A stretch of DNA of 64,000 nt, from NCBI GenBank assembly GCA_965644265.1, contig OZ286476.1:20026001-20090000 (forward strand). Reading direction: 5' to 3'. Source of the DNA: Glycera tridactyla (taxonomy: Eukaryota). The notes beneath the pieces were generated by a model that saw only the letters and a list, made by a program, of their open reading frames with translations, was not told where the DNA came from and ran no database searches. A program made the translations under genes and the position numbers. Of the stretch, positions 1 to 34,005 are shown piece by piece (position 1 is the stretch's first letter; the number at the start of each line of letters is the position of its first letter).

Positions 1-694
1 TAGCCACTTCCCCAGTGAATCAGAGAAATCATTTTCCCTGGAAATATTTTACTCCAGAATTCTAGCTAAAACTTTTGTGAGTATCATGGTGTCAAACAGA
101 AAGCATCAGTGCCTTTTGGTGTGAAAACTGTCTACTCCCACCATCAATTTTCTGGATGCAGTGACTGTAATACAAGTACTGGGTGGTATAGGGGTGAATT
201 ATCAAAGTTCTGTTTCCACAGTGAATCTCATACCTTCTCATTCAATGATATGTTCCTTCCATAGAAATTATGGTTAAAACTTATATTCTGAGTGAAAGAT
301 TCGCACTCCCCTGTTGAGAGTGGGTTCAGCCATTTTACTCTCCCAGTTTTAGATTCACTTTTCCTGGGATTAGGGAGAGTGACCAAACTTGAAGACTGTC
401 ATAGGTAGGTCTGTGTTATTGAACACCAATGAGACAATCAACCAACCAATCAACCAATCAGTCTCAGCTCTATTATCTTAGACAGGTTCATTTGTATAAT
501 TGTAGGTAGGTAGAAATGTGTCAAACTGACTGCTACTTCCACTTGACTGCCTTTCTGGTTTCCCTTTATATTGTGTTTAGGGTTTGTGAGAGTGATACCT
601 GCAGTGGACAGAACATCTAACTCTCATGGATCAGGACACTTGCCATCCATAATGCTTCGAGTTGACACATGCTATCAAGCCCCAATCATCTGGC

Positions 695-895
695 CAGGGC
701 TCTACGTTGGCCAAGATATCAAACTGAAGTTGAAATTTTTGGTAGCCCATGCAAAATTTTGGTAGCCAGTCAATACATTGCCAGTTACAACCTCTCAAAT
801 TTTGGGGGCCACTGGCTTATAACTTTCAAAACATGGTAGCCAGAGGGTAAATTTGATAGCAATTGGCTACCTACAGGTAGCATTGTAAAGCCCTG
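695..895. mobile_element. hAT-like MITE (CAGGG termini) nested in a SINE-like repeat
   Basis: cagggctctac / gtaaagccctg TIRs; second copy at ~30815-31010. Confidence 0.7.
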
Positions 896-3550
896 CCGGC
901 CAACCAACCAACCAACCAACCACTGATTCATGGACTACATGACATCTAGTCCAGTACATTGTCACCCTGTGAACATGATATCAGTTCACATGGTCCCCAC
1001 TCTGCATCTTGGACATGACATGCTCTGTTAGATGAAATGACAGAACCATAATAACAGTTGCTTTTATTGACTATTCTTGCTTCTGACATGTCTTATTAAA
1101 ACTATTTCTTTGTAGAGCTCTTACACCATACTGCTCTGTTTATTGGCTGCATTTTCACTGTCATTGCTCGTTTACAACTGCTATTTACAATTCATTCTGT
1201 TTCAGCATTAGGTGCTCTCACCTATTTTCTGCTAGTTGTAGATGCTATCTTTGTTATCTTCTACATATGTAGATATAGTTGTGTATCCTGTATGGTTATT
1301 AATTATGGTGTCACAGATTACTTCTGATGTTCGTGCAGCATGTCAGTTATCACTGAACTTCTCTTGTCAGGTTGAAATTCACTTGGCTGTCTTCTTTCTG
1401 GGTCTGATTATGTTTTTTTTTTGTCTTGTGTATGCACAAAATTGGACTACAGTCAAACATATCATAAGCAGCCACACTCGGGAAGGGCAAAGGTTGGCTG
1501 CTTAGGACTGGTGAATGAATGCTTAGGGTAGGTGAGTTATAGTGAAAAATCTTCTGGTCGGTTATTCGAGTGGCTGGAGAGGCAGATGGCCACTCAGTTC
1601 AGTGGCAGCTTAGGACAGGTTAGATCTTACATAAGCATGTCATGAATAGATGCATTCATTTCATCATTAGGATGTCAGACAATATGTTTCATACTTTCTA
1701 CAGGGTATATCCTCATGAACTTTCAGCTGATTATGGCTGCAAAAACTGGCTCATGGCCACCGGATTCTTGAAATTTTCTGTAATGGAAGTGTGGCATGAA
1801 AGGGAGGTAACCCTGAATTGATCACTGATGATACTACACTTGTGGTGTGTCATAAAAGCAAGAACACTCCAATGTGATCATCATAATGATATCAACTGTC
1901 TAGTGGGATAACTTGCTCAGTCTTCTCTTAATTTCTGTGAAATATGACATGCTGGTAGTCTCTTCAGCAAGAAACTTGTCTTTAGCAACCTTTGTTCGGA
2001 ATCCCTTAGTCCTCTATGCTCAATACAGGTTCCCTATCATCATTATTTTGTATTCAAATTCTTATTCTTTTTCATTTTTGTCCCCAAAACACCCCAGTTC
2101 TTTGATTTAGATATCTTTCACTGAGTTCTGAGGTAGTTGCATCAAGAATAAACAGATAACGTTTCATTCAAATGTGTAGCAGTTTTACCGCAACTTGAAT
2201 GCCACAGGCATGTGAGTAGATCGGACCACCTCAGGAAATCTGAGGAATTTCTGTCAGGCTTGAGTGTAAACAGTTGTCAGCTACTTCCACATGACGACTG
2301 TTCTGATACCTCATAGCTTATGAGAGCAATGTCTTCTGAGGTCAGAGCGTGCAGGTTTCTCAAATCAGGAACACACTGCATACACAATTGATTGACTTAA
2401 CACATGTCACATACCTTCAATCTGGCTCAACATCATCTTGTGTTCAGGGCTTGTGAGGGTGAGGAGGATGAGTATGTAATTGCCAGGGCACACAGCGAGT
2501 TGATACATGCTGTTAACCCCAATTATTCAATCAATTGACAGTTAGTCATCCAGATGATGTGTGGTGAGATTGACGATAAAAATCTCTTGGTAATCCAAGG
2601 TTCAATGTTAAGGTTATCTGAGATGTACACATAGCCACCAAATGCAGGGCTTGGTTTGTGCACATGCAAGATCCATCCTGCTCTTTTCTTCAGGTTGATA
2701 ATCCAGTAGGGGTTGATGAGACATAGAATATAGTTAACCAATCAGGCAGTGACGTAAAACATTACTCAACCTATCAGTCAGCCATAGAACTTTAATAGCT
2801 GGGAGGAGGTACTCCAATTTGAGTTCTCCGCCATTTCTTCATAGCTCCGTCGATATTCTGAATGAAAGTTTTTTTCAGACACTTGGGGGACCAACTTGAC
2901 CTAAAAGATACCTTCTTCTTTTTGATGATGGATAAAAATCATATAGCTGATATTTTCTCTCAGCATCGCCTCTTTGACTGCTCAGTATCTCTTGCATTCC
3001 CATTCTAACCCACAGCTACTTGGCTGTCATTGCCAAGAAACTTGGATTCATTGCACATTCATGAACAAAGACCAAAGTATCCATTGTCAATTGTATATGA
3101 TTTGTCATAAATGCTATATGATCAGATAGATCCATGTACCCGATCAAATCATTGTTCCATGCTTGGCTTTTGTTATATGGTTAGCAGTTCTGCATGGTTG
3201 AAACTGAAATCTCCAATTCTAAATTTCCAGTTCACACTTCAATTTACATAGTTGTAGTTGAATGTTGCTACATCTAGGACATTCTTTTCTTTCTCATCTT
3301 CTGTTCTTTGATGGCATTTTGTATGCATGTATGTCTGTTGGGCAATAATGATGACAGCTTCTTCACATTCTGCTTCGACTTCTCTAGCGCTCATCTTTGC
3401 AGCTAGATAGACCCACAGAGCAGTTGTGTTCTGGTATCTCATTGTTTACACTGGTAATTTGGTCATCAGGTCTTATGCGTATGAAATATACATAAGTTAT
3501 TTCATGAATTCTCTGTTACTAATCATTGTTTCTCATCCCTGCCACTGCAG

Positions 3551-6500
3551 TTGAAGAAGAGTTCTTCGATGCACCAGCAGCAACTCAGGTGACTACCATG
3601 GTTGTACAGACAAAGCCACGTGAGGTGACTGAAGTAACAAAGGTTACTCAACAAGTAGGAATGGTTCCTAGTGAGATTGTCATGGAGATACCAGCACAAG
3701 AAACCAAAGTAACAACGATGGAGAAAATAAGTCGACATGTTAGAACTGTAACAATTGGGGACAAAACCATCACCCGGGTTTATGAGCAGCGGGGCGATCA
3801 GCAGCCAGAAATTGTTTCTGAAGTCATGACTCTGCCAACAGGAGAACAAGTACAGCCAGATGAAGTGACTAGAAGACTTGTCGAAGCTGAACTTCAGCTG
3901 ATTCCATCACAACCGCAGATGGTCCAGGAACAAACAACACTAATTAAGCAAGGTCAGGTCACTGAGATACAGGTCACTCCACAGCCACAACAGATTCAGG
4001 CCACTAAGGTCCGACGTGAAAGTAGAACAATGATCCTTGGTGACAGGAAGATTACAATTGTAACTGAACAGCGAGATGGACAAGAACCTGAGGTAGTATC
4101 TGAAGTGATGACCCTGCCATCTGGTGAGCAGGTTAAACCAGATGAAGTTACCATGAAAATGGTACGAGCTCAATTGCTTACTGGAACCCCAAGTATGGCC
4201 CAAGTGCAGACGACCATCCAGCAAACAGGACAGGTTGTGGAGATGGTGATTCCACCTCAGACTGAACAAGTCCAGGTCAGAGAAGTACACAGGGAAAGTA
4301 GAACCATTCACATAGGAGGAAAAACAATAACTCAGGTTATTGAACAGAGAGATGGTCAGGAACCAGAAGTGGTATCAGAAGTTATGACTTTGCCAACTGG
4401 CGAGCAAGTCAAGCCGGATGAGATCACCAAACAACTTCTACAAGCACAACTGAAAACAGGACCTCAGACTTTGGTGCAGGAACAGGTTACAGTCATGCAA
4501 ACGGGACATGTAGCTGAAGGTCTTAAGATGCCAGAACCTGAGCAGGTACAAGTGTCAAAGGTGCGTAGAGAGAGCCGAACAATTGTTATTGGTGATAAAC
4601 AACTCTCACAGATCTTGGAGCAGAAAAGCGGGCAAGAGCCTGAGGTTGTAGCTGAAGTGATGACATTGCCAACCGGTGAACAGGTGAAACCAGATGCAGT
4701 TACTCTCGAACTTGTTAAGGCTCAGTTTGGTGTCACTCCACAAATGTTGACCCAGGAAATACCCTCGAAAGAAGCTCCTGAGAAAGTTACTGAAGTGCTG
4801 ATCATGCCACCGAGTGAGGAAGTCAGGGTTTCAAAGATTCGTAGGGAGAGTAGGACAGTTATGATAGGTGATAAACAACTTACACAGATTATTGAGCAGC
4901 GTGGACAGCAAGAACCAGAAATAATATCAGAATTTGTCACATTACCTACTGGTGAGGAGGTCAAACCAGATACAGTGACCAAGAAATTGGCCAAGGCTGT
5001 TCTGGGACCTTCTCCCAAAATGATGAGTACTACACAGGTAGCACTTCAGCCTACAGAGCAGGTAACTGGTATGGTCATTGAACCCCAGGGTGAGGAAGTT
5101 ATTGTATCAAAGGTCCGTAGAGAAAGTAGAACACTCAAAATTGGTGACAAACAAATTCAGCTTGTCCTCGAACAGCGAGGTGATGCAAAGCCAGAAGTGG
5201 TGTCAGAGGTCATGACATTACCAACTGGTGAGGTGGTTAAAACAGATGAGGTGACTCATCAGTTAATCTTAGCCCAGTTTGGACCTGGCCCTGAAATGTT
5301 AGTTCAAGAACAGAAGGAAGAAGTCCAGCCTGAACAGATAACAGCAGTTTCAGTTCAAGTTTCACCTCCAACGCAGATTGCCAGAGGTGTCAAGGTTCAC
5401 AAGGAGACTAGAACAATCCAGATAGGTGATAAAGTAGTCACCCAAGTCGTTGAGCAGAAAGGTGATCGTCAGCCAGATATAGTTTCAGAATTTGTAACTT
5501 TACCATCAGGTGAACAGGTGAAACCAGATGAGGTCATACAGAAGCTTGTAAGAACTCATTTCCAGTCATCACCTGAGATGATGGTCAAGGAGCAAACATC
5601 AGAGGTTGGCCCAGAACAGATCACTAGTATTGTGGTCTGCCCTGAAGGTGAAGAAGTGCAGATGACTCGTGTCCGCAGGGAAAGCAGAACCCTTAGCATT
5701 GGTAACAAGAAAATTGTCCAAGTTATTGAACAGCGAGAGAACCGTACTCCTGAAGTTGTCTCTGAGGTGGTAACATTGCCTACTGGAGAGAATATCAAGC
5801 CAGACGAAGTCACTACCCAATTGATCAGGGCCCAGATAGCACCACAAGTAGTTGTGAAAGAGCAGCCTTTTGATCAGACTCCAGTCACAGAAATTAAGGT
5901 GACACCACAGCCGCCAAAGCGCATGGCAGGTAAAAAGATCAGTAGGGAAACCAGGACTGTAATTCTGGGAGACAAAACACTGACACAGATAGTCGAGGAG
6001 AAAGAAGGTCAGCAACCCACAATCATATCAACTGTGGTCACCTTGCCCAATGGCAAGGAAGTAAAACCAGATAAGTCAACAATGGAAATGTTTGAGACTC
6101 AGTTGAAGAAGCAGACAACCATGGTCCTTGAGACCAAGCCAACAAAGGTTCCTGCCCCCAAAGACAAAATCTCTGAAGTAACAATTGTTCCAAAAGGAGA
6201 ACATACAGTTGCTGAAACAGTTCACAAAGAAACTAAAACAATTACTCTCGGTAATAAAACTGTTACTCAGGTGATTGAGAAGCGTGATCAAAGAGAACCA
6301 GAAGTTGTTTCCACTGTAGTCACTTTGCCCTCAGGTGAACAGGTACAGCCTGACGAGGAAACAATGAAAGTGATCAAAATGCAACTCCCACAACAACCGA
6401 TGGTCTTGGAGCCACTCATTCCAGAGAAAGTCACTGAGATTGTTATTCAGGCAACACCAGAGGAAGTTAAACCTGTAACTGTCCATAGGGAAACTAGGAC

Positions 6501-9500
6501 ACTTGTGATTGGTGATAAAGTAGTTAAGCAGGTTCTTGAACAAAAAGGTGATCAAGCCCCTGAAGTAGTGTCTTTGCTAATGCAGTTGCCTAGTGGAGAA
6601 CAGGTCCAGCCTGATGAGGCAACTATGCAAATGCTATCAGCACAGATTAGCGCAGTCCCACAGATGATGGTTAAAGAACAGCCAACTGAATTAATCCCAG
6701 ACAAAGTTACCGAGGTTGTTTTTGCTACTGCTGAACCGAAGCAAGTTCGCGGTGCAACAGTGAAACGTGAGACTCGTACTGTAACCATCGGTGACAAGGT
6801 TGTTACCCAGGTTCTTGAACAGAAAGGAACTGAGCAGCCAAAGCTTGTCTCCGAAATTGTGACACTCCCGTCAGGTGAGAAAGTGAAACCTGATGAAGTT
6901 ACAAAACAACTTTTGGAGGCACAATTTACAATTGGTCCTCAGATGATGGTGCGAGAGCAGAAGGCTGATGTGGCACCTCAGAAGATCACTGCAATTGTTG
7001 CTATACCTGAAGGAGAGCAAGTGCAGGTATCAAAAGTTCGCAGGGAAAGTCGAACAGTGACCATTGGTGAAAAGAAGCTCACCCAGGTGATTGAGCAGAA
7101 GGCTGAGAAAGAACCAGAAATTGTTTCAGAGTATGTGACTCTTCCATCTGGTGTGCAAGTCAAACCAGATAAGGTTTTGAAAGAACTTGTTCAGGCACAG
7201 GTTGGTACCACTCCACAAATGATGGTGCATGAGCAGCCAGAAGATATACCAGAGAAGGTCACCTCTGTCAAGGTCAAACCTATGGTTAAACGTGTTGCTG
7301 GCAAGAAAGTTCGCTCTGAAACTCGCACTGTAGTTATTGGAGATAAGACCATAACCCAAGTGGTTGAGCAGAGGGAAGGGCAAGAACCTGTCATTTCATC
7401 AACTACTGTTACACTCCCAGATGGCAAGAAAGCTAAACCAGACAAAGCCACGATGGAAGTATTTGAAGCCACAGTTAAACTACAGCCAACAATGCTCGTA
7501 CAGGAGGAGCCCAAGTTGGTCAAAACGCCAAAAGACAAAATATCAGAGATTGTGGTTGAGCCTAAAGGTGAGCAAGTAAGCATGGAGAAAGTCCACAGAG
7601 AAAGCAGGAAGATTACTCTTGGTGGTAAGACCATAATACAGGTTATAGAGCAGAGGGGGGATACAGCCCCAGAGGTCGTTTCTGAAGCGGTGCTCCTGCC
7701 CAGTGGCGAGCAGGCAAAACCAGACAAAGCAACTTTGAAGATGTTGCATGCCCAACTCCAAGAACAACCAGAGTTGACTGTGCATGAGTTAGTTCCAGAA
7801 GAAATATCGCAGGTCAAAGTTTCAATGCCCCAGTTTGAGCAGGTGAAAGGTGTGACAATGAGACGTGAAACTAGGACAGTGACAGTTGGAGATAAAACTA
7901 TCACTATGGTAATTGAGCAGAAGGGAGATCAGCAACCTGAAGTTGTCTCAGAATTTATGACATTGCCCTCAGGGGAAAAGGTAAAACCTGATCAAGTCAC
8001 AATGCAAATGCTCAAGGCTCAAATGACCCGTCAACCTGTGATGACACAGGAGCAAGTTGCTGCCATGCCAGCAGGTCAGCTGAGTGAAATCATCATCTCC
8101 CCAGAGCCAGAGACAATCCAGCCTCAGAGGACACGCAGAGAATCCAGGACCATTGTCATTGGTGACAAGACAGTGTCTCAGGTTATCGAACAGAGAGATG
8201 ATCGCCAACCTGAGATAGTTTCTGAGGTAGTGACTCTGCCCATGGGTGAACAGGTTAAACCAGATGAGGTGATAATCAATGTTCTAGAAGCACAGAAGCT
8301 TCGAGAACCAAAAATGATGGTGCCAGAACAAATGCTGCAGGTTTCACCAGAAGGTGTGGCTGAGTTAGTATTCCACCCACAGCCAGAACAGGTTAGTGTG
8401 CAGAAGATCCGGAAGGAGAGTCGTACAGTTACCATTGGTGACAAGACACTCACACAGGTTATTCAACAGACAGGTGACCAGGCTCCAGAAGTCGTCTCTG
8501 AAATATTGACTTTGCCAACAGGAGAGCAAGTTCAGCCAGATGAAACAACTAAACAAGTTCTGGAAGCCAGTATCAAAATGGCTCCACAGCTGATGGTGCA
8601 GGAGCAGGCCACTGTTTCTGAACCAGAAAAAATCACTGGTATCCTTGTAGCTCCTGAACCAGAAGAAGTCAAAGTGTCCAAAATTCGTAGAGAGAGTAGA
8701 ACTTTGACAATTGGAGATAAGAGAATCTCCCAGGTCATTGAACAAATGGATGAACGCCAGCCTGAAATTGTAGAGGAATTTGTGACACTTCCATCAGGCG
8801 AACATGTAAAGCCAGATGAAGTGACTAGAAAATTAGTTCAAGCACAGATGGGTGAAGTTCCTGAAATTATGGTTCTGGAACAGCCTGCTAACAAAGATCA
8901 GGTTAGTGAAGTTGTTGTCATACCACAAGTCAAACGCATAGCTGGTAAGAAAGTCCGCAAAGAAGTCAAGACAATTATGATTGGTGATAAGACGGTCACT
9001 GTGACAGTTGAGCAGAAAGAGAAACAGGAACCCCAAATCCTGAATGTGGTTGTCAAGTTGCCGAATGGTAAAGAGGTAAAGCCAGATAAGGAGTTGTTAG
9101 AAATTCTTGAGTCGCAGATAAAGTTGGAACCTAAAATGCTCATCAAAGAGCAGCCAACTATTAAACCATCTGAAAAAATCACAGAGATGATATTCGCTCC
9201 AGAGGAACCTCGAACACAGACTGTTAAGGTTCGTAAGGAGAGCAGAACTATCACCATGGGTGGTAAAACTATCAAGCAAGTCATCGAGAAGGTTGGTGAT
9301 GGGGAACCAGAGGTTGTCACTGAAATTGTGACTCTGCCAACTGGTGAAGTTGTCCAACCAGATGAATCTGTGAAGCAGATTCTACTGGCACAGATCAACC
9401 TGAAGCCAGAGATGATTGTTGAAGAGGAGCCTGTTCCAGAGCCTGAGCAAGTGACTGGTGTATCTGTCAGTTCTGAGACAAAGACTGTCAAGGGGCTGAA

Positions 9501-12500
9501 GGTTAAGAGAGAAACAAAAACTATCCGTGTGGGTGATAAGATCATCACCCAGGTCATTGAGCAGAAAGGTAGGAAGAAACCTGAGGTGGTATCATGTATA
9601 TTGACACTACCTTCAGGAGAACAGGTGGAGCCTGATGAAGCTACACTGAAGATAGTTGAATTCCATCTCAAGCCTGAATTCACACCGGAACAGATTTCTG
9701 AAATCAAATATGTGCCTACTGAAGAGGTTCAGGTCAAGAAAGTCCGCAGGGAGAGTAGGACGGTTGTCGTTGGTGACAAGAAAGTAACTCAAGTTATAGA
9801 ACAATCTGATGATCAAGAGCCACAGGTCGTCTCAGAGATTATGACCCTCCCAACAGGCGAAACTGTGAAGCCTGATGAGATTACAAAGAAAGTGGTTGAG
9901 GCACAGTTGAAGCAACAGCCACAGCTTAAAGCTGCAGAGCAAGTTGCACCTGGCTTTGAACAAATCACTGGAATCTCGTTTGCACCAATTACAGAAGAAG
10001 TCAAGGTTGAGAAAACCAAAGTGAGTAAACAGACCAAGAGTTTTACCATTGGGGATCAAACATTGACACAGGTCATTGAACAAGTAGGAAATGGACCAGC
10101 TGAGGTTGTTTCCGAAGTTGTAACTTTGCCATCTGGAGAGCAGGTTGTTCCGGATAAGATCATGCTTGAAATGTTCCATGCACAAATGCAGCAGGAACCT
10201 CAGCTGAGAGTTCAGGAACAGACCACAGTTTTGGCCCCAGGACAAGTCCAAGAGATAATTATACCACAGCCAGAGCAGGTTGGTGTTGGACAGATTCGAA
10301 GAGAAACCAAATCGGTGACTATTGGTGATAAGACCATTACTAGAGTAATTGAACAGAAAGGTGACAAAGAGCCAGAGATCATTTCTGAGATTATGACTCT
10401 GCCTACAGGTCAAGTTGTTGAGCCTGATGAGGTGACTCGTAGACTTGCTGAGGCTGAATTCAGGGAACCACAGATGATGGTTCAAGAACAAACAACTGTT
10501 CTCCAGCCAGACCAGGTTCAGGAGATCTCCATCATGCCGATTGAGCAACAGGTCCAGGCTGGTCAAGTTCGCCAAGAGACCAAGTCTGTAACAATTGGAG
10601 ATAAAACTGTTACACAGGTGATAGAACAGAGAGATGGTAGGGAGCCAGAGGTTATTTCGGAGGTCTTCACACTTCCAAGTGGTGAACAGATAGTACCTGA
10701 TGAGGTGACAAAACAAATGTTCCATGCAATGCTGAAAGGTGAACCACAAACCATGGTTCAAGAACAGATGACAATGTTCGCCCCAGGACAGGTGCAGGAA
10801 ATAATTGCACTACCCAGAGAAGAGCAAGTTCAAGTTGGCCAAGTACGACAGGAAACTAGGTCAGTGACTTTTGGCGATAAAACTGTCACTCAGGTAATCG
10901 AGCAGAGGGAGGGGAAAGAACCAGAAGTAGTGTCAGAAGTGTATACACTGCCGACAGGTGAACAGATTGTCCCCGATGAGGTAACAAAGCAGACCTTCAA
11001 GGCTATCTTGAGTGGTGAGCAGCCACAGATGTTAGCTCAAGAACAGACAACTGTTCTTGCTCCCGGTCAAGTGCAGGAGATTGTCATGATGCCTCAAGAG
11101 GAACAGGTACAGGTTGGCCAAGTGCGCCAAGAGACCAGATCCATAACTCTTGGAGACAAAACCATCACTCAGGTGATTGAACAGAGAGACGGTAGAGAGC
11201 CTGAAGTAGTATCAGAAGTATTCACTCTTCCAACTGGTGAACAAATTGTTCCTGATGAGGTCACAAAACAGACTTTGAAGGCAGTTATTAGTGGTGAGCA
11301 GCCACAGATGTTAGCTCAAGAACAGACAACTGTTCTTGCTCCCGGTCAAGTGCAGGAGATAGTCATGATGCCTCAAGAGGAACAGGTACAGGTTGGCCAA
11401 GTGCGCCAAGAGACCAGATCCGTAACTCTTGGGGACAAGACTATCACTCAGGTGATTGAACAGAGAGACGGTAGAGAGCCTGAAGTAGTATCAGAAGTAT
11501 TCACTCTTCCAACTGGTGAACAAATTGTTCCTGATGAGGTCACAAAACAGACTTTGAAGGCAGTTATTAGTGGTGAGCAGCCTCAGATGTTAGCTCAAGA
11601 ACAGACAACTGTTCTTGCTCCAGGTCAAGTGCAGGAGATAGTCATGATGCCTCAGGAGGAACAGGTACAGGTTGGCCAAGTGCGCCAAGAGACCAGATCT
11701 GTAACTCTTGGAGACAAAACTATCACTCAGGTGATTGAACAGAGAGATGGTAGAGAGCCTGAAGTAGTATCAGAAGTATTCACTCTCCCAACTGGTGAAC
11801 AAATTGTTCCTGATGAGGTCACAAAACAGACTTTGAAGGCAGTTATTAGTGGTGAGCAGCCACAGATGTTAGCTCAAGAACAGACAACTGTTCTTGCTCC
11901 CGGTCAAGTGCAGGAGATAGTCATGATGCCTCAGGAGGAACAGGTACAGGTTGGCCAAGTGCGCCAAGAGACCAGATCTGTAACTCTTGGAGACAAAACT
12001 ATCACTCAGGTGATTGAACAGAGAGATGGTAGAGAGCCTGAAGTAGTATCAGAAGTATTCACTCTTCCAACTGGTGAACAAATTGTTCCTGATGAGGTCA
12101 CAAAACAGACTTTGAAGGCAGTTATTAGTGGTGAGCACCCACAGATGTTAGCTCAAGAACAGACAACTGTTCTTGCTCCCGGTCAAGTGCAGGAGATCGT
12201 CATGATGCCTCAAGAGGAACAGGTACAGGTTGGCCAAGTGCGCCAAGAGACCAGATCAGTAACTCTTGGGGACAAGACTATCACTCAGGTGATTGAACAG
12301 AGAGACGGTAGAGAGCCTGAAGTAGTATCAGAAGTATTCACTCTCCCAACTGGTGAACAAATTGTTCCTGATGAGGTCACAAAACAGACGTTGAAGGCAG
12401 TTATCAGTGGTGAGCAGCCTCAGATGTTAGCTCAAGAACAGACAACTGTTCTTGCTCCAGGTCAAGTGCAGGAGATTGTCATGATGCCTCAAGAGGAACA

Positions 12501-13825
12501 GGTACAGGTTGGCCAAGTGCGCCAAGAGACCAGATCCGTAACTCTTGGGGACAAAACCATCACTCAGGTGATTGAACAGAGAGACGGTAGAGAGCCTGAA
12601 GTAGTATCAGAAGTATTCACTCTTCCAACTGGTGAACAAATTGTTCCTGATGAGGTCACAAAACAGACTTTGAAGGCAGTTATTAGTGGTGAGCAGCCAC
12701 AGATGTTGGCTCAAGAACAGACTACAGTTCTCGCCCCTGGTCAAATTCAGGAGATGGTCCTGATGCCACAAGAGGAGCAAGTCCAGATCGGCCAAGTGCG
12801 TCAGGAAACCAGGTCAGTTACTATTGGTGATAAGACTATGACTCAGGTTATTGAACAAAGGGAGGGCAGAGAGCCTGAAGTTATTTCCGAAGTTCTCACT
12901 CTCCCGACTGGTGAACAAATCCAGCCTGATGAGGTAACTAAACACATGTTTGAGGCACAGCTTAGAGGGGAACCACAGATGATGGTACAGGAGCAGGTGA
13001 CTACACTTGCCCCTGGTCAGGTTCAGGAAATGGTCATTGCACCTCAGGAGCAACAGGTATCACCTTTCCAGATCACTACTGAGATCCAACAAGCATCTAC
13101 GAGTCAACTTCCTACTGAAGTACATGAGCAATTGACCCCCCAGTCTGTAGAGGTCATCACAGAGGGTCTTGTTCCAGTTGCCCCAGAGCAAGTTGCACCA
13201 AGTCAAATAACTGTGGATACTACCCATGCAGGTGTAACTCTTCCACAGCCTGCTCAAGTGTATGAACAGGTCAGTCAAATGCCAACTGAAATGGCCACAC
13301 CTGAAGAAGAATTTCATGATGCACCTGAAAAGATGGCTCCTTCCACAGTACCTACAGAGACAATTGTTGCAGTCACACAGCAGCCACAAATTACTCAGAT
13401 TGGTGAGCAACCCGTGATTGATCAGCCCAAGGAAGTGATAACTGAGCAGGCACCACTTCAGCCAGAAGGTATACAGCCACAGGAAGTAGTTGCTCCCGCT
13501 GCTCAGCCACAGCCCCAAGTCACAGAACAAGTTGTTCTTAAGAAGGAACCAGTACCTGAACAACCAAAGCAAGAAGTCATGGAAGATGTCTCCATGATCA
13601 TTCAACAGCCTGTACAACCGCAGCAGGTGATGGAGGAAGTCTCCATGGTCATGGCACCAGAACAACCTCAACCAACACAAGTTACTGAAGATGTCACCAT
13701 GCAAGTAGTGCAGCAGCCGACAGAAGTAACCCAAGATGTGAGCATGATGATTCAACAAGAACAGAAGCCTCTTGATGTTATCGACTCGGCACAGATGACA
13801 GTGTTGACTCCACAGCAGCAGCAAG
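3551..13825 (+). CDS. Giant internal exon (10,275 nt, phase 1-1) encoding a ~90-aa repeat array
   Basis: 3446-aa ORF; TACTAAT branch-like motif 3517-3523; acceptor ctgcag|TT at 3550/3551; donor CAAG|gtatct at 13825/13826; length divisible by 3. Confidence 0.93.
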
Positions 13826-14420
13826 GTATCTACTACTGGCATGCTGCTTCCCTCAGCAGCGCATGAACATAGACAAGCTTGCATGGAGACCACCATCATG
13901 ACAATAAACCCATATTTGCAGAAATGCTACAATAGTATGCAGTTTTAACAATGTGTTTGAATGCTACAGAATGCCTTAGATAGATTTTTTTTCTTTCTTT
14001 TGATATTAAACACTTGAATGAGCACTTGTCAGTTGAATAACATCTTTTGTTTATTTTCATTTCATTTCATTTCAAATATTGATGTGCGCTTTGCATTTTA
14101 GTAAATATGTGGCACATGGTACATCAACCAAGTTGCATATTTATCTGTCAGTATTAGATGTTTTTTCTGTACGCAGTGCATACTAAAGTTTCACAGAAAC
14201 AAACTTAACTTGTACATGCTCTTTTAATGGTTTCATTCCATGTTATTGATGCCTATTTACTCACATAAATTTTTCATTCTTTTTCTGTTGCTATGTTGCT
14301 ATATGTTCATGCATCTTAAATCTTTCCGTCCTTGAATCATTCCATACTTAAGTATATATCACTGTTACTCCACCCTTGTTTCAATCATTTCAACCTTATT
14401 CTTTATGGACATACTCAACA

Positions 14421-14457
<37 letters not shown>

Positions 14458-17400
14458 GCCAAACAAATGTGATATCCCTGAAACCTATCATGAGTATGGC
14501 AGTAAAAGCTTGTTTCATGCTCTGTAGGTGCTCATATTCCGGCATTTCCGGATGATGTATAAATGAAAGAACAGCGTCTTAAATTGGGCATTCTTTTTGT
14601 GGTGTACCGCGGATAAAGTTCTGTGTGCAGCCAGCATTAACTGTACCTGCTTGATACCAGGAATCAAAATTTCTTGTTTGAAGTTCTTTGTCCTATCACA
14701 TGAAATGAGATTTCAGTGTAACAAATTTGTTATAATTATTGGGCAGTGAGGAACATATTCATGAACAGAAGTCATTAATCTTCATGTCATCTCTTTTCAC
14801 GTCTAGCCCAGTTATAAGCATATGATCAGTTTGTTCAGGTAGCAATTCAACATTCATTCTGTTCATCAAATGACACCATATTCCTATTCTCCTGCCTCTC
14901 ATCAGAAATGTATTCTGTTGGAAAAATGGGAACATCCGGTCCCATGGATTTGTATTGATGATAGTCATGTTATCTGTGAATGACAACAAGAAAGAATACA
15001 TCAAATTTTTGTTAGGAGGATCTTAAGTCCCAAATTTTTAGATGTCCAAATATTAGTCATATCCAGTGATGGAGGTGATTTTCATAATGTGATTGGCTAT
15101 AAAAGGGTGAACCACCTGAAATTGCTGCATCTGAATTGGTTCCTCAATCCAAATGCTTCAGATCACACTTGAGTGTGTGACTTCTGTAGACTTTTTTTGT
15201 GAAGCACTATGTCTTCCATTACATTATCATAACTCTAGAGTATTGTGCATGAAGCATTGTACCATTGCCTTACTGTTTGCATCCTGATATAGCTTCAGTT
15301 ATGATCTGCTGTGTTTTAGATAAGTAATATGAAGTAATATCAAATCTTGTCAATGGTCACTATATATAATTCTGTTTAGTATTTATTCGTTTATCTATTT
15401 GTTTCAAAGTTAATTCTCTATGATATATATGATAGATAACGAACAGAATGTATCTATAGATCAAACTTTCAATAATTTATCGTAAAGTTGTCTCACTTGT
15501 ATATTTATATGAAATATGTAAATAATTGAATGACTAGATGATTTTATGTGGCAGCAATATCGTATTTGCTCTTACTAATCTGCTTCAGTTCTGTTTGACA
15601 GATGTGCAGAAGTCAATAGAGCTATTGACTTCAATGGCCCACTCGGCTCTTTCTGTAATGTTCTATCTGCTGGCTACTCTACATCTCTTATGATGCTCAA
15701 AATCTTCAAACTAATACAGTCATATCTTCCTTGTTGGAACTATACGCTTCATAGACAATATTATCAGTATCGCAATAAGATTTATCATCTGAATAGCTTT
15801 ATCATTGATTCGGAAATATTTTGATTGGATTCAGACTTTCTTGCACTAGTTGTCCTCAAGACTATTGCATGCAAAGTCAATCCAATCAGTCCAACAAATT
15901 TCATTCAGATTGTTTTCGATAGTGATATAAAACCAATGAGAATAATATGGTCTATTCACTTGAAGGCTTTCGATACAAAACTAACATGATACAATCAGCT
16001 ATCTTGGTAATATGCTCATGCCTTCATCATTGTTGCTATTCTTGTAACATTCTTGTAACATTCATCTCAATCATCTCTCTCGCTCTTCATCCTTCATCAC
16101 AATCATCCTCTCATACTGACAGCTGCTCTGCTCTTACACAGTAACACACATCTGCGAACCATGCACATAAGTGAAACAACTATTCAAGTAAATATACACA
16201 TAATCACACTCATCCGCAAGCCTATTAATGAAATTGATGGGTTTGTGGGCATACAATTATCATTCAGTCATCCATAATGTGTGACTGGACACATTTACTT
16301 CAAGGTACCCCATTTATTCCTCTTTCTATATTTACACATAAGGTATCCTTTTCCCATTAGTATTCAGCAAACACTTTGTTTATTTGGTATGGTTCCATTA
16401 TATTTAATGGAGCTTTCCATGATCATATTCAATATCATGTGGTATGTATAAACCTTTTGTACTATTAAATATCATTCTTTTTATCTTTGCATATTAAATT
16501 CAACCAATATATATTATGCGCTGCGAATATTTTCTTTCAATATTTAAATACATGTTGTTTCATCACCAATTTATTGTACACACAAACTTCTGCTTCTTCC
16601 AATTCTTTCTCTGTACCTTCCTTTTTGTGCTTCTAATATCCACAGTCTTGTTGGCCTGTCATCAATGATTTGGCTTGCTTTCTCGCATCTGCATTGCCTT
16701 TCTGAGAATGTTTCTTGTCTCAAATCGATCCCTTCCTAGAAACCCTCATGGCGATCATGGTGTCATGAGGTTGGGATCATCGTGTTGTTTATCTGTTGGT
16801 TATTCATTTGCTGATTAAGAATTCTTCTTTTCTTTTCTAATCATCTTGCTTATATTTGTATCTCTTGATTTCAGCATGTTATTTGCATGCCAGGTCTGTC
16901 AACCTGACTTAGTAATTTAATGCGCTTAGGACTGACTCAGCATGTGAATAATAACTCAGGATACTGCCACCATAAGAGTTGTATTCTCTAGCACTCAGGT
17001 GTAATCATTCAAAAATACATTCCTGTTGTGTAAATGGTTGCTTTGATGCAATGTGCTTTGTTTACAGCTGTTACCATGGAAACAGTGCAACAAGTTGTCG
17101 AGGTACCCACAACACAGGTTGGTGCCCAGCAGGTGCAGGTTACTATGAGGACTGCACAGCTCGTGGGACCAACCACAGTGCAGACAGTGCAACAACAGCA
17201 AGAAATATCAGCGGAGATGGTTGAAGCTGGTCTTACTCCTCAGACCCAGGAGTCGGCTACGTCTGGTCAAGTTACAATGCAGTTTGTTACATCAGAACAG
17301 ACCATGCCAGCAGAAATGCAGGCTATGATTCAGCAAGCTCAATTCCAAACTGGACAAATCGGCGAGATCTCTATCGATACGATCCCCGAAGGTGCTACAG

Positions 17401-20400
17401 AACAGCAGGTCACTACCATAATCAGGTCTGCAGAAGTTGTACAGCCGAAGCCACTTCAGGCTATGGAACAACAAGCCCAGTTCCAGATGGGACAGATGGG
17501 AGAATTCACTGTTGAGGCCATGCCAGTGGATGCAACTCAAGAGCAGGTTATGACACAAGTGACTACAGCTCAGGTCTTGCAACCTACCCAGTTACAGGCA
17601 ATAGAACAACAGGCACAGTTCCAGATGGGACAAATGGGAGAATTCACAGTTGAGGCAATGCCAGAAGAATCAACCCAAGAGCAGGTGATGACACAAGTCA
17701 CTACTGCTCAAGTTGTGCAGCCTGCGCAACTGCAAGCAATGGAACAGCAGGCCCAGTTCCAGATGGGACAGACTGGAGAATTCACAGTCGAAACAATGCC
17801 AGAAGAATCGACCCAAGAGCAGGTGATGACACAAGTTACTACTGCTCAAGTTGTGCAGCCTGCGCAACTGCAAGCAATGGAACAGCAGGCCCAGTTCCAG
17901 ATGGGACAGACTGGAGAATTCACAGTCGAGACAATGCCAGAAGGTGCAACTCATGGGGAAGTTCTGACTGAAGTAACAACAGCCCAAGTGATGCAGCCAA
18001 TGCAGATACAGGCGATTGAACAACAAGCTCAGTTCCAAGTGGGTCAAGTTGGAGAATTCGTTTCAGAGATGGTTCCTCAAGAAAGTACAACTGTTGAAGT
18101 CACTACAAAGGTGACCTCTGCTGAGGTACAACAGCCTATGCACATGCAGGCTATGGAGCAACAAGAACAGTTCCAAGTCGGTCAGGTACAAGAATTTGCT
18201 GTTGAAATGAAGCCAGAGGGTGTTACTCAGGAGGAGGTTGCACCAGAGGTTACCTCTGCCATGATCATTCAACCAACACAACAGCAGGCACTGGAACAAC
18301 AGGCACAGTTTGCTGTTGGACAGTTTGGTGAAATAGACACTGAAGTTGCGCCAGATGTTGTAGCACCGACTGATGTTACTCTTGATGTAGCACAAGCACA
18401 AGCCGAGCCTCAGATAATGACTCAAGTTGGTCTGCAACAAGAAGCCATGGCCTCTGAGGTGATTGCAGAAGGAATTCAAGAGCAGACACCTGAGCTGATT
18501 GCACCACAGGAGATTGCTGTTGATGTCACTATGGCGTCACAGGTGACACCTGCTGAAATTCGTGTTCAGGAGCAAATCTCGAGAGTTCTCTCTGAGGAAA
18601 GTCTTGAAGAGGAGTTTGTTGATGCTGCTGAAGAAGTGGCTGTACCTACCGAAATTGGTGTTGCCACAACCACAGCGCAAGTTGAAATGCCTCAAGCCAC
18701 ATTCCTAACAGAACAACAAGCACAGATGCAGATGGAAGTGACTGCTGAAGGTGTGGTGGCACCACAACCTGAAGAGATCATTGCTGGACAGGTTCAAGTG
18801 ACAGCTGTCACGGCAGAGATGGGTATCAAACCACAAACACTCGTTATGGAACAAGCACCAGAAGAAATGCCCAGTGAACAAATTGCAGAAGGTGTCCAAG
18901 CACCAGAAGGTGTGGTGATCGCTCCAGGAGAAGTGGCACCAATGGTTGTCACCGCAGAATTGAGTGGTGTACCACAAGTCCAAGCCATGGAACAAGCTCA
19001 AACAGTTCCAGGAGAAGAGGTGACCAGTGGAGTTATGGTTATTGAAGGTCAGACACTTGCACCTGAACAAGTCACAGGGGTCATGGATACTGCTACTGCA
19101 GCGTTGATGATGCCTTCCCAGATGCATGTTGTTGAACAACAGGGGCAAGTCACCACAGAAGTTATTGAGGAGTCTGTAACTCTGCCAACTGGTGAAACTG
19201 TTGTAACACAGAAAGTTATCACTAAAACGTCAACTGCAACACCACAGGAACCCATGGTCATGCAAGTCGGTCCACAGGAAGTAGTCATGACGAGTGAGCA
19301 AGTTGATACCGTTCAACCACAGCAGATCCAGGAAATGACAACGCAACAAGTCGTCACTACCTTGGGTACTGCAACTGCTGAGGGACAAACTACTTTGACC
19401 ACCGCCCAAGATTTCACCATGACTATGGAAGGTCAGCCACAAGAGATCACTATGGTAACAGATATGCAGATGATGGAGCCACAGCAGGTTACTACCGAGA
19501 TGGATTCCGCCATGGTTACCGTCCCGAGTATGATGGCGACTGAAGTTGTCTCAGAAGGTATAACCATGGATGTGACACAGCCGACACAAGGTAACGGTCA
19601 CGCATGGTGTGACGCTAGCGAAATGGCATCCTTCTTTGCATACTTTTTATACTTCATGTGATGCATGTCTCATTCGATTACTATCATTATTATTAGTACA
19701 ATTAAATGTATTGCATGAATTATGAATTAAAATTTGCATGTTACTTAATAACTTTAATTTGATTTGTGTGTATTCTTGTTATTAGTTTAAGTCACATTTT
19801 TATTTTGCTCTTAATTCTTTTCTTCTGTTTGGTCTATTCTGCAGCCACTCATTCTAAGCTATGTCTTGCATTTGAACACTCCGAGTGTTTCTGTTGCTTA
19901 GAATGCATTCATCTCATTTTAACATTATGATACGTCTTGCTTTTCTTTTCTGGATAACTGCTCTTGATTTGTATTCCTGTTATGGAATCAAGAGATGTGA
20001 TATCTAGCTACTAGCGCTGATATTCTTTTTCAGTTTTTGCTCAAATATAAGTTGCATGTGGCATGATGCTGCATCCTAATATAGTGATAATTTGTACTTT
20101 TTATGTGTGTTTTGTATGTAGTCAAGTCACTTATCAGAGGGCGGAACATCTAGCTCTCTTCAATCTGAAACACAATGCATATGTTAACCTGTGGATAGAT
20201 ACATGCCGTTGAACTATCAACCAACCAACCTTTCAGAGATGATGACATTATCTAGTTTTGACTCTCGGAAGTATTTCTTCTGTTTGAGATCACTAGAAAC
20301 GAATGTGATTCAGAGACTGCGCATTGCAAAGAGTGTAAGATGTGTGTATTCAGCAACAACAGAGCCTTATCCTTTGCAGCAAATCTGCAAAAAGTTTTCA

Positions 20401-23445: not shown

Positions 23446-26400
23446 TTTTTTAGTGATAGGAATCATGTCAGAGACATATTTCCAGATTGTACTGGCAACA
23501 GGTCCATGAAATGTGTTCCAAATGCCCAAATTATTTTTTGGCTTGTATGGGATTTGAACCATCAACCTTCCAGTTTGGCACCCTTGCCAGCAACAAACTG
23601 CCAGCGCTCTTGTCCNNNNNNNNNNNNNNNNNNNNNNNNNNNNNNNNNNNNNNNNNNNNNNNNNNNNNNNNNNNNNNNNNNNNNNNNNNNNNNNNNNNNN
23701 NNNNNNNNNNNNNNNNNNNNNNNNNNNNNNNNNNNNNNNNNNNNNNNNNNNNNNNNNNNNAAGCATCTGCATCCATAATGGAACTCCATAATAGTTGCCA
23801 GACGATGAGTTGATACTTCATACATTCCAACTAAGGTGTACAATAGTATGCGCACTCATTGAAGTCTGAGGGGTAACTGGAAAATATCAATAGAGACACA
23901 AGTCGTCCATGATTCTGGCAGGTGTTTGCCATGGGTTATCATATAAGGGTGCTCACGGTATTTGGTCATATCATTAGTTGTGTAAACATCCAATAGCATG
24001 TGTAGGGAGACATATGTGATCATGCCCCTCTCACACACCAATACACACACACACACACACATACACACACACACACACACATTTGCGTGCATGCAAACAA
24101 ACAAGCAACACAGACTCACACACACACATTGATCGCTACATTCCAGCTACATTCCGAAGTTCTGCGCTGAAAACTGATGTTGGCTCATTTCAAATATGTG
24201 ACATTCCCCGCATCACTTTCATCATTCCCCCATCATTCCATCCATCATCTCATCTCGTCATTCATCATCCATAATATCATTTCTATGTTATTGTGATCAT
24301 TTTTGACATGGTCAAAGGTCTGTGCAAGTGTTTTATTTTTGGATCTGTACTTTTGAAGATTTTGATGATCAAAAGTACCGATTCAAATCTGCAAATGCTA
24401 CCCCAGATCTCGGCCATGCACTGCGGCTTTGGACACATCAAAGTGTCTATTCTGCAACTTTGAATGTTTGACTGATTGTTTTTTTTCTCTTTTAATTTAT
24501 TTTATCTGATGCTGTGTCTTCTCCAGAAGTGCAAGAGGGTATGACAATCTCGTAAGTTGGTTTACTTCTATTATTGTCTCAACCAAAAGGAAACAAATAT
24601 CAGTCATTTTCTCTAAATATAAAGCAGCAAATGCTTAGGTGATTCGATGTGATGTTGGAATTTCAATTGTTCAGGCAAGTTGAATATGCCTAGTGAATTT
24701 CATCAGTATTCCGCTTCACTGAAATGTCAGTAACTTTTAAGTGCAATTTCTTTCATGCCAAAGATTTTGTTGTTTTAAATCAAGATCATTTGTAACAAAT
24801 TGGAGGGTTAGTGTAATTATATGCCTTGTGTTTCATGACACATGACATCTGCTCAAAGCACATAAGGTTATCGCTGATATGCCGAAAAGCACCCATGGTT
24901 TCAATATACTCTTAATGGCTCATAAAAAAAGCACAGAGCCATTTGCGGTGTTCTTGAAAGTATCTTGCTAAAATCTAATGAAATTTTTCAACTAGACGAG
25001 TTGTGCTTTACTACCTATCATCCTCCAAATGTGAATAGTTACTTCTTTGGAGGCAGTGAGGGGTTTTGCTATGTGCTCTGCCCAAGCAAGTAATTCCTTA
25101 CTGAGAAATGCTCAGCGTGAACAGACCTTTGAAAATATTTTATCATAAAGTTGGGTGAAGTTTGGTCCCAGACTGAACATCATACTTTGATACCCATGAC
25201 GATAGACCCCTCGGTGAGAGACCACCTGTGACGAGAGATTGCCTCGAATGTCAGTAAATAGTAGTCTCCTGAAAGAGATGGTCTCTCATTGGATGTATAT
25301 TTGACTATGTCAATTAGAAAAGCTGCCCTGATAAAGCAATCTTCGTCAGAGGTGGTCCCTCATCAAGGGTCTGTCATTGGTGGTTTGACTGTATCATCCA
25401 GGGATGTGATTCTTCTGTGAATCCGCATATTCCCGACAATCAGCAGGCCATGTGCATGACAGCAAAGAGCCTTCTCTGCTGAGTATATTGGCTTTTAGAT
25501 CATGAAAATTGGACCAGTATTAGTGGGGATAGAGCACAATGTTTGTATGGAGTTCTGGTAGCCTTCAGTCACCAGTTGTTTGGGTTTGTTGATCCACAAA
25601 ATCTTAGTGTAAGTGCTACCGGTCAGGTTTTCAGTGTTTTTGTTTGTGAGCCAATCACATCCCTGATCATCACAGGTTTGACTGTATATTTACATTTTCA
25701 CATCCTGTGTTTCATCTCATTATAGTTTGACCAGCCAGCAGCAGGTGATCACTGAAGATACCACTGACCTGACTGTCATTCCTGGTAAGTACAAACCTTT
25801 CAGTGTCTACCCTTATCATTGTATGTATGTACGATGTAGTACAGTTTTCATTTGTAATGAATCAACCCCACCCCCACCTCCCTCCATTATAATTCTCCTG
25901 GTGGCTGCCATCTGGCCTTCCTTGGCTACTTTTATTGTCAGATCAGGGGTGAAGAAGTTTGTCCTGGAAAGTGTCATGTGCGATAATGACAATCAAACAA
26001 TTTTAACTTTGGAGGGATAGCACTGCTTTTAAATTTTGAAGGATAGCACTTATCGTGAATTATCGAAGAATTTGGTGAAATTTCTTAGCCTATAAGATTT
26101 TGATTCAACTGAAACGAATCAGTCCCTTATTTGAATCTTCGTATGAGTGTGCGATGCCTCCGGTTACTCGAGCTTCTAGATTGTAAAGTGAATATTTGAT
26201 TAGGAGATACATATAGAGCAGTCTTATATACTTGCCTCTTTCAAATTACCAATAAATTTGGATTTGCCAGCATTTGAATTTTTCATATTCACAATGCCGT
26301 TGTACCGACTGGTCTCTCCCTGCATTCAATGAATTATTCTCATATTGAGAATGAAACTGTGTTTAATAATACACCATTGCAATGTACAAATTACATCCTC

Positions 26401-32400: not shown

Positions 32401-34005
32401 CATGTTAATTCAGGTGAAATGAAAGTCTCGGTTTATTTGAATGCATGTTTTCCAGTTTGTGCTTATCATTGTTTAGATTTATTTAATCCATCTTGCATGG
32501 TGTGATTTTTTTAATGTGTGCTTGTAATTGTATTCCCTCCTGATATAATGGCTTTCTTAAGTGTTTGTTTTATGTGAACTTGAGAGTAGCATGGTTAGTG
32601 TTCCTTACCTTCTCAGGTATGAGTCCATGACCTTGGGACAATCATAAGAATTCACAAGATAGACCCTTGTAGTAATTCCACGATCAGGTCCACTATGTGA
32701 TGTCCCTATTCAAGTCCTTAGATATTGCTCATATGTTTGTGAATTAGTGTTGTGAAACTAGTTTCCCTCATTATCTATAAGCTAACTACTCAATATCATA
32801 TATATGTATAGTCATAGATTATTGATAAGTTGGTCTATGCTGTTGATATCTAGAATTTTACAGCTTTTTTATACCCCTGTTTTTTTCTCATGTTTTCTTG
32901 AATTGCTCAGCTGATGATGATTCATGTATTGTTCATTCACAATGAAAACTTTCTTACTCTATTTGTTAGTGTTAGGGAATAATATTAGGATAATGAGCAT
33001 CTGGACATATTTCAATTGATTTTGATATCATAATCAATGTTTAGTCAACATTTTGAAAAGAAAGATTTAATGTATGTGTGTTGACTGGTGTGGATATAGG
33101 AGTGGGAGATTTTGTATTGAATATGCTCGGAAAGCAGTCTCCTGTCTGCAGCAGGTCCTTTATCCCACTTGACAACCCTTCAGGTTCCCTATCATCTTGT
33201 GTTCAGGGTTTGTGAGAGTGATGCCTGCAGGGGAGAGAATATCCAGCTTTCATTAACCAGGAACACACGGCATACAATTATAATTGCGGTGTTTTTGGCT
33301 CAAGTAAAAGACAATATGGCTTATTTGTTGTTCTTCCTGTGATTTTTTTCAGCACCCGAGCAGCAGGTGGTGGAGGGTATGGCACCCCAGTTGGTGCAGA
33401 AACCTAAACCACAGGTCGTCAACGAGGGCGAGGATGTTACATTCGAATGTCGTCTCGTTGCTAACCCCCAACCAGAGGTTGGTCAATGTTTTATTGTTGC
33501 TTGACTGTTACTTGTGGATGATTATGTTTATCAAGCTGCCCTCATCTATTGCAAATCCATTAGATGCTTATTGTATGACAGCATTCATGATAGCCCTGAA
33601 AATGAACGTCTTATAATGGGTAGAACAACACATTTCAGTATACAGACAGAAAGCCAACACATTTTCATTGAATCTAANNNNNNNNNNNNNNNNNNNNNNN
33701 NNNNNNNNNNNNNNNNNNNNNNNNNNNNNNNNNNNNNNNNNNNNNNNNNNNNNNNNNNNNNNNNNNNNNNNNNNNNNNNNNNNNNNNNNNNNNNNNNNNN
33801 NNNNNNNNNNNNNNNNNNNNNNNNNNNNNNNNNNNNNNNNNNNNNNNNNNNNNNNNNNNNNNNNNNNNNNNNNNNNNNGTGAATTTCTTCCATGCTATTG
33901 TACATGGCTATCTAAGTATACACATGTATGCATGCACATGCATTTATACAGAAGTGTGTACAAGCGTATACATGCATGCATGGATATGCTCTCTGTCTGG
34001 CTCTT

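Follow-up and report, generated by a model that had tools for sequence, protein, structure and literature searches.

Three FFAT-like motifs beside repeat arrays in two giant exons of an apparently titin-like gene from the annelid Glycera tridactyla

[quoted passage not shown] Docking of FFAT motifs by VAP is a general means of attaching other organelles to the endoplasmic reticulum (ER) in eukaryotes, and most of the clients known so far are lipid-transfer, signalling and channel proteins associated with membranes; the motif type is a familiar one, and a titin-like filament protein would be a new and unexpected host for it. The three sites are credible FFAT-like motifs on the grounds of their sequence and statistics, the disorder predicted around them, their expression and their retention between paralogues; VAP binding, a role in tethering the sarcoplasmic reticulum (SR), a spacer role for the large repeat array that lies between two of the sites, and regulation through exon skipping are inferences. 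We lean, if only slightly, towards the view that the three are copies of one FFAT-type motif carried by disordered linkers in the extensible part of a titin-like protein, and we put the chance that at least one of them is a functional docking site for a VAP MSP domain at a little better than even. That a titin-family filament is fastened to the SR at several points through VAP is a bolder proposal, one that we regard as possible though doubtful. The features on which the argument turns all lie on the plus strand:

3553-3579, plus strand: motif 1, EEEFFDAPA (core EFFDAPA at 3559-3579), found by the regular-expression scan; score 2.5, flank EMKVEE, which comes partly from the upstream exon.
13303-13329, plus strand: motif 2, EEEFHDAPE (core EFHDAPE at 13309-13329), found by the same scan; score 2.5, 105 residues past repeat 34.
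18606-18632, plus strand: motif 3, EEEFVDAAE (core EFVDAAE at 18612-18632), found by the same scan; score 1.0, flank EESLEE.
3551-13825, plus strand: giant exon 1 (10,275 nt, 3,425 codons, phase 1 in and out), from splice signals and transcript-like contigs.
3646-12996, plus strand: array of 34 repeats of approximately 93 residues each, from a domain table made with a hidden Markov model (HMM), a repeat alignment and AlphaFold2 (AF2) models.
12997-13825, plus strand: post-array tail of exon 1, disordered according to AF2 and a paralogue of the stretch that follows the array in exon 2.
17068-19590, plus strand: exon 2 (an alternative donor moves its end to 19557), from splice signals, phase 1 at both ends.

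Over seven residues the sites read EEEFFDA (3553-3573), EEEFHDA (13303-13323) and EEEFVDA (18606-18626). Motif 1 stands at the very beginning of exon 1, the first full codon of which is the start of the motif, and the first repeat copy begins approximately 25 residues after it; motif 3 lies approximately 75-100 residues downstream of an array of 46-residue period in exon 2. An earlier note on this DNA had reported three FFAT-like sites, had described the first two as each differing at one position from the OSBP core EFFDAPE, and had taken these two for VAP-type sites approximately 3,250 residues apart that bracket a 34-repeat array. The scan recovers all three sites at exactly the positions given there, and the comparison with OSBP agrees with the core printed in a 2022 review (PMC9213790 Table 1). 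The distance is borne out as well, since the cores of motifs 1 and 2 are 3,250 residues apart, and between them an HMM derived from the repeat sequences detects 34 copies (exon 1 residues 32-3148). The second interval along the filament, from motif 2 to motif 3, is approximately 690 residues.

In composition the two exons are abundant in V, Q, E and T (Glu 12.5%), and F (1.3%) and D (2.8%) are scarce. We made 2,000 composition-preserving shuffles of exons 1 and 2 together with 11 upstream residues (4,276 residues in total). EF.DA, which is observed three times, occurred on average 0.0125 times per shuffle and reached three copies in 0 of the 2,000, and EEEF.DA was absent from every one of them. 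Windows with an FFAT score of 2.5 or better (scoring is described below) averaged 0.025 per shuffle, with a maximum of 2, and sites scoring 1.0 or better did not arise at all. For EF.DA and EEEF.DA the outcome was the same when only the 1,195 non-repeat residues were used. These shuffles rule out a chance origin of the three EF.DA sites.

FFAT motifs have the consensus EFFDAxE preceded by an acidic tract. The sites were scored with the penalty table of Mikitova and Levine (2012; Table S2A in the supplement to PMC3261905), in which lower is better, and as a calibration we applied our implementation to 11 motifs confirmed by experiment for which the 2022 review prints scores (PMC9213790 Table 1); 8 of the 11 came out identical and the other 3 came out stricter. 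Just three sites in exons 1 and 2 score 3.0 or better, and these are motif 3 (EESLEE-EFVDAAE, 1.0), motif 2 (MATPEE-EFHDAPE, 2.5) and motif 1 (EMKVEE-EFFDAPA, 2.5), and all three scores lie in the span covered by VAP binders that experiment has confirmed. Motif 3 is within the cut-off of the 2012 table (2 or less); motifs 1 and 2 satisfy only the looser cut-off of less than 3, which defines a 'strong' FFAT-like motif under a later matrix (PMC8306308). The six residues upstream of the core have a charge index of 4.5 in motif 3 (EESLEE), which is optimal, as against 2.5 in motif 2 (MATPEE) and 2.0 in motif 1 (EMKVEE), and the weak flanks cost motifs 1 and 2 one penalty unit each. Within the cores, the sub-optimal positions are Ala at position 7 of motif 1 and His at position 3 of motif 2. 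For comparison, the 2012 study gave a score of 1 or better to only 15 human motifs, of which 12 had been known as FFATs before (PMC3261905). By these measures motif 3 is the strongest of the three and the best candidate for VAP docking. The earlier note, which had proposed position-specific scoring as a check, had ranked motif 3 last; the 2012 table leaves all three sites at 3.0 or better and moves motif 3 to the front.

Further downstream in the window there is a possible fourth FFAT-like site, KESSQE-DFLETHE (44005-44025, plus strand), which has a score of 2.5 and lies in an acidic exon at approximately 43324-44823. A site of that grade is found in 5% of shuffles of that exon, and alone it is not significant.

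The segments that carry motifs 2 and 3 are paralogous. Over approximately 340 columns, the exon 1 tail aligns locally with the part of exon 2 that comes after its array (18300-19590), with a score of 259 and 31% identity, and the 100-residue window around motifs 2 and 3 gives a z of approximately 11 against shuffles. Motif 1 probably lies in a segment of the same descent: its spliced flank, QVQVAKQEMKV, is weakly like the flank of motif 2, QVSQMPTEMATP. The best 9-residue window of the tail alignment is EEEFHDAPE/EEEFVDAAE, in which 7 of the 9 residues are identical (score 32); against a background of 31% identity this corresponds to a binomial P of approximately 0.005 (our own calculation, for a window chosen beforehand). 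At the level of codons, motifs 2 and 3 differ synonymously for Glu (GAA/GAG) and for Ala (GCA/GCT), and in comparison with motif 1 there is also TTC/TTT for Phe; the identity of the motifs has therefore been kept at the protein level and does not reflect recent copying. It looks as though one ancestral linker element has been kept in three diverged copies, and the retention of the motif in tails that have otherwise diverged would be a modest argument for constraint. On this evidence the layout is best pictured as a series of arrays, with a related, disordered linker that bears the motif after every one of them, and this region of the gene seems to have grown by the duplication of modules made up of an array plus a linker, with the arrays replaced afterwards.

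The same observations bear on the proposal that the motif has no function, being a single chance product of acidic low-complexity sequence that was then copied along with the duplicated linkers. The sequence is indeed Glu-rich (12.5%), paralogy accounts for the recurrence of the motif without any selection, and the exons seem to be lineage-restricted and fast-evolving. Against this, even a single EF.DA is expected only 0.0125 times and no shuffle holds a site at 1.0 or better, and in tails that retain 31% identity, 7 of the 9 residues of the motif are still the same, although the copies differ at synonymous sites. We consider this explanation improbable.

The structural context of the motifs was modelled with AF2. 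In a model of motif 1 together with two repeats, for which 27 repeat pairs served as the alignment, the repeat unit has a core of approximately 60 residues comprising three strands and a helix, at a predicted local distance difference test score (pLDDT) of approximately 90, and the cores are separated by linkers of approximately 33 residues with pLDDT below 50. In this model motif 1 is without secondary structure (pLDDT approximately 55). In a second model, of repeat 34 and the exon 1 tail, the 265-residue tail that holds motif 2 has a pLDDT of 30-40 and no secondary structure, with repeat 34 folded in the same run at approximately 88. An unstructured context is a criterion for FFAT motifs, and prediction places all three sites in one, motifs 1 and 2 by AF2 and motif 3 by way of its paralogous segment. 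The motifs are thus predicted to lie in unstructured regions beside repeat arrays. The large array itself is modelled as a string of small folded domains with disordered linkers, which would be compatible with a spacer or a spring. To that extent the spacer role given to the array by the earlier note is a possibility; the bracketing of a spacer by two motifs describes the layout less well than does an array followed by its motif-bearing linker.

Searches with the repeats gave little by way of relatives in fold or family. Pfam returned nothing significant on exon 1 or exon 2, and with the two-repeat model Foldseek gave no clear match (best E-value 0.01, TM 0.15), VIA gave as its best hit a sulfatase C-terminal subdomain with a Z of 7.1, within the stated noise range, and ESM Atlas gave TM values of 0.28 or less. 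Within the array, some eight copies at the end (10759-12996) are near-identical to one another and the opening 25 or so have drifted apart to 40-50% identity, which suggests that the 3' end of the array was recently amplified or homogenised.

Both exons appear to be expressed. Exon 1 sits in an uninterrupted plus-strand reading frame (3526-13866) and has the splice signals ...ctgcag/TT at its acceptor and CAAG/gtatct at its donor. When Logan contigs from four runs of two studies were placed on positions 1-6000 of the window, one long contig per run (4.2-7.6 kb) aligned over 3549-6000, and the intron before it was without contig cover in bins 2601-3400 and, by contig placement, up to approximately 3548. 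Before 3549 the contigs carry a spliced-on upstream sequence, ...GCAGGTGCAGGTTGCTAAGCAGGAGATGAA, that is identical in at least three of the four runs (X1, X2 and X6) and that reads in frame across the junction as ..QVQVAKQEMK-V-EEEFFDAPA; this confirms the acceptor and the splicing of exon 1 into transcripts. 'RNA?' is the sole label that the runs bear, and the fact that the cover is restricted to the exon argues for RNA. Because motif 1 opens exon 1, its acidic tract is set by the upstream exon, which lies outside the window, and the flank that this exon supplies (..QEMKV) is weakly acidic and includes a Lys.

Exon 2 begins at the acceptor tttacag/CT, and the frame is kept with either of its ends, 19590 or 19557. 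Its array consists of at least 7 copies with an exact 46-residue period, defined by spaced anchors, at 17330-18390, and is followed by the tail with motif 3. The repeat reads ..QAMEQQAQFQMGQMGEFTVEAMPE..TQEQVMTQVTTAQVVQP.., and a Pfam search with it found no family beyond a sub-threshold match to the RRP5 OB domain. Approximately 0.43 of the words sampled from 13000-20000 are present in the same four runs, compared to an exonic share of approximately 0.48; this fits expression of the exon 1 tail and exon 2 if sequence differences have cost some of the words, and transcript-like contigs probably include exon 2. Exons 1 and 2 are both symmetric (phase 1 at each end), and skipping either would therefore keep the frame.

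Comparison of the contigs with the assembly also brought out some differences. The transcript contigs of one study are without 3 nt at 3985 (an in-frame indel), and at 4522 all four runs have G where the assembly has C; both are probably allelic differences from the assembled individual. In the upstream intron, 401-1000 and 2401-2600 are covered very deeply by many small contigs with odd mutual joints, and these intervals look like dispersed repeats or transposon fragments that are expressed elsewhere in the genome, not like exons of the titin-like gene. The window contains runs of N at 23616-23760, 31750-31879 and 33678-33878.

The nature of the host gene is suggested by exons further downstream on the same strand, which encode an SH3 domain, two I-set immunoglobulin (Ig) domains and an IQ motif:

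38955-39461, plus strand: I-set Ig exon, by domain match, with titin as the best match in the PDB.
52393-52932, plus strand: I-set Ig exon, by domain match, with titin as the best match in the PDB.

Among PDB entries, the one that the Ig exon matches best is titin, 6fwx (2.9e-38). On this domain content the host would be a titin-like muscle-protein gene, known here from its same-strand downstream exons. A cytosolic location of the motifs would follow from the titin-like context, as Ig, SH3 and IQ are typical of intracellular sarcomeric proteins.

How far the sites can be read as VAP docks has to be judged from both sides. In support of that reading, which the earlier note had coupled to ER tethering, the sites are non-random, are the sole FFAT-like sites in the two exons, score in the range of known binders, are predicted to be disordered and lie in expressed exons; the proposal is weakened in that motifs 1 and 2 are moderate and that the copies are paralogous. 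Several further observations weigh against it. In the yeast assay of 2012, loss of 2.5-3 elements abolished targeting (PMC3261905), which on sequence alone makes borderline cases of motifs 1 and 2, at 2.5; the residues that flank them include Lys or are poor in acids, and a Lys directly follows the core of motif 2. The motif window is barely the best-conserved block of the tail alignment, with a score of 32 against 30, 30 and 28 for others. The three sites, being paralogous copies, are for that reason statistically less independent. What ties the Ig and SH3 exons to exons 1 and 2 is their downstream position on the same strand. No orthologues of exons 1 and 2 were found in the databases searched, and cross-species conservation is a standard criterion for FFAT-like motifs (PMC8306308). 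Lastly, in the literature searched there was no paper linking FFAT with titin, and FFAT, sarcomere and sarcoplasmic reticulum co-occurred only in a general review of ER-mitochondria contacts.

The search for relatives covered both exons. A word search with the whole of giant exon 1 returned no relatives, as did a word search with exon 2, and an exhaustive phmmer search of the first 1,200 residues of exon 1 against 1.84 billion representatives returned only two short repeat-bearing fragments, both of them from a marine eukaryote metatranscriptome (ERR1712168) and neither with the motif. A C2-repeat protein that was matched in the phmmer search is unrelated. Exons 1 and 2 thus appear to be lineage-restricted or unsampled. 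A PDB sequence search with 30-residue motif peptides found nothing, as expected for queries so short.

According to a second explanation, EEEFxDA belongs to a duplicated inter-array linker as one of its conserved elements and has some other role, for example as a dock for a different partner, sarcomeric or signalling, or as a structural cap beside the arrays, and its likeness to FFAT is a coincidence. The three copies do seem to be descended from one linker segment, further blocks such as (V/I)AP..I.VD are nearly as conserved as the motif (30 versus 32), and the acidic flanks are weak in two of the three motifs. In the AF2 model, moreover, a strand at residues 13-18, just past motif 1, packs on repeat 1, albeit with low confidence. 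However, no other short motif is known to fit E-F-x-D-A (FxDxF for AP2, LIR, B56 LxxIxE, RVxF and the clathrin box were considered, and none fits), the FFAT-defining positions 1, 2, 4 and 5 are kept in all three copies with variation confined to the tolerant positions 3, 6 and 7, and motif 3 has a score equal to those of confirmed binders. We think this explanation unlikely, if by no means negligible. Even without VAP binding, the motifs would stand for a conserved part of an inter-array linker that had not been described before.

If the sites do bind VAP, contact would begin electrostatically through the acidic EE(E) run, and Phe2 and Asp4-Ala5 would then fit into the FFAT groove. Sites as widely spaced as these (approximately 3,250 and 690 residues) would engage separate VAP dimers, and several such contacts could fasten the reticulum membrane to the filament at multiple points. 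The docked protein might also be another MSP-domain protein, MOSPD2-like or lineage-specific, which would lead to a different compartment or partner: MOSPD2 binds conventional FFATs, and MOSPD1 and MOSPD3 bind the related FFNT motifs (PMC7705450, PMC8306308). Nothing in the window bears on this choice; in the systems studied, however, conventional acidic FFATs prefer VAP-A/B, and MOSPD2 is also an ER protein, so that the outcome for the cell would be similar. We give this variant a small chance, the smallest among the alternatives considered here.

Should docking onto VAP prove right, the VAP-FFAT system would extend to a cytoskeletal filament, with a giant elastic sarcomere protein as the client. 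A prominent and ordered SR is described for the obliquely striated muscle of annelids in one account (PMC2107334), and a link between filament and SR would therefore have something to organise; this is context and not evidence. Such a link would offer a testable answer to the question of how calcium stores are aligned with the contractile lattice in invertebrate muscle, and specifically in the obliquely striated muscle of annelids treated in that account, and would be an invertebrate counterpart to the obscurin/small-ankyrin solution to the registration of sarcomere and SR. Alternative splicing of the symmetric exons, or the choice of upstream exon at motif 1, could then set the coupling of reticulum and filament for each muscle.

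The closest comparison is with the classic FFAT motifs of OSBP (core EFFDAPE), VPS13A (EFFDAPC) and CERT (EFFDAVE) (PMC9213790 Table 1). The worm motifs are identical to these at E1, F2, D4 and A5, motifs 1 and 2 share Pro at position 6 with OSBP and VPS13A, and motif 1 (EFFDAPA) differs from the confirmed motif of VPS13A at position 7 only. An acidic run directly upstream (EE in each worm motif) and a disordered cytosolic segment are likewise common to both, with the disorder predicted and the cytosolic location presumed in the worm. The worm motifs score 1.0-2.5 and those of OSBP, VPS13A and CERT 0-1.5. Unlike the classic motifs, those of the worm would belong to a giant titin-like filament protein and not to a membrane-bound lipid-transfer protein, there are three of them to a chain, separated by hundreds to thousands of residues, two copies have H or V at position 3, one has A at position 7, and the acidic tracts of motifs 1 and 2 are weaker. 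As regards position 3, protrudin, with the core EFKDA-E, binds VAP despite a non-aromatic residue there (PMC3261905), and in this it resembles EFHDAPE and EFVDAAE, for which binding is a prediction: VAP binding is possible for E-F-x-D-A-x-E even where position 3 is polar or charged. Protrudin differs in being itself a membrane protein of ER and endosome with a single motif, and its core alone costs 1.5 by the 2012 table.

With the elastic regions of titin and sallimus the worm gene shares giant symmetric exons, long tandem arrays, disordered linkers and downstream Ig exons; it differs from them in that its 93-residue and 46-residue repeats match no Pfam family. In vertebrates, the sarcomere is linked to the SR by obscurin and small ankyrin-1 (sAnk1.5). 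That system works with ankyrin-binding sites and a small SR ankyrin in place of FFAT and VAP, and there is no sequence relationship between the two; the outcome proposed for the worm would nevertheless be the same, a giant sarcomeric protein that holds the SR in register with the myofibril by way of a short site in a disordered region.

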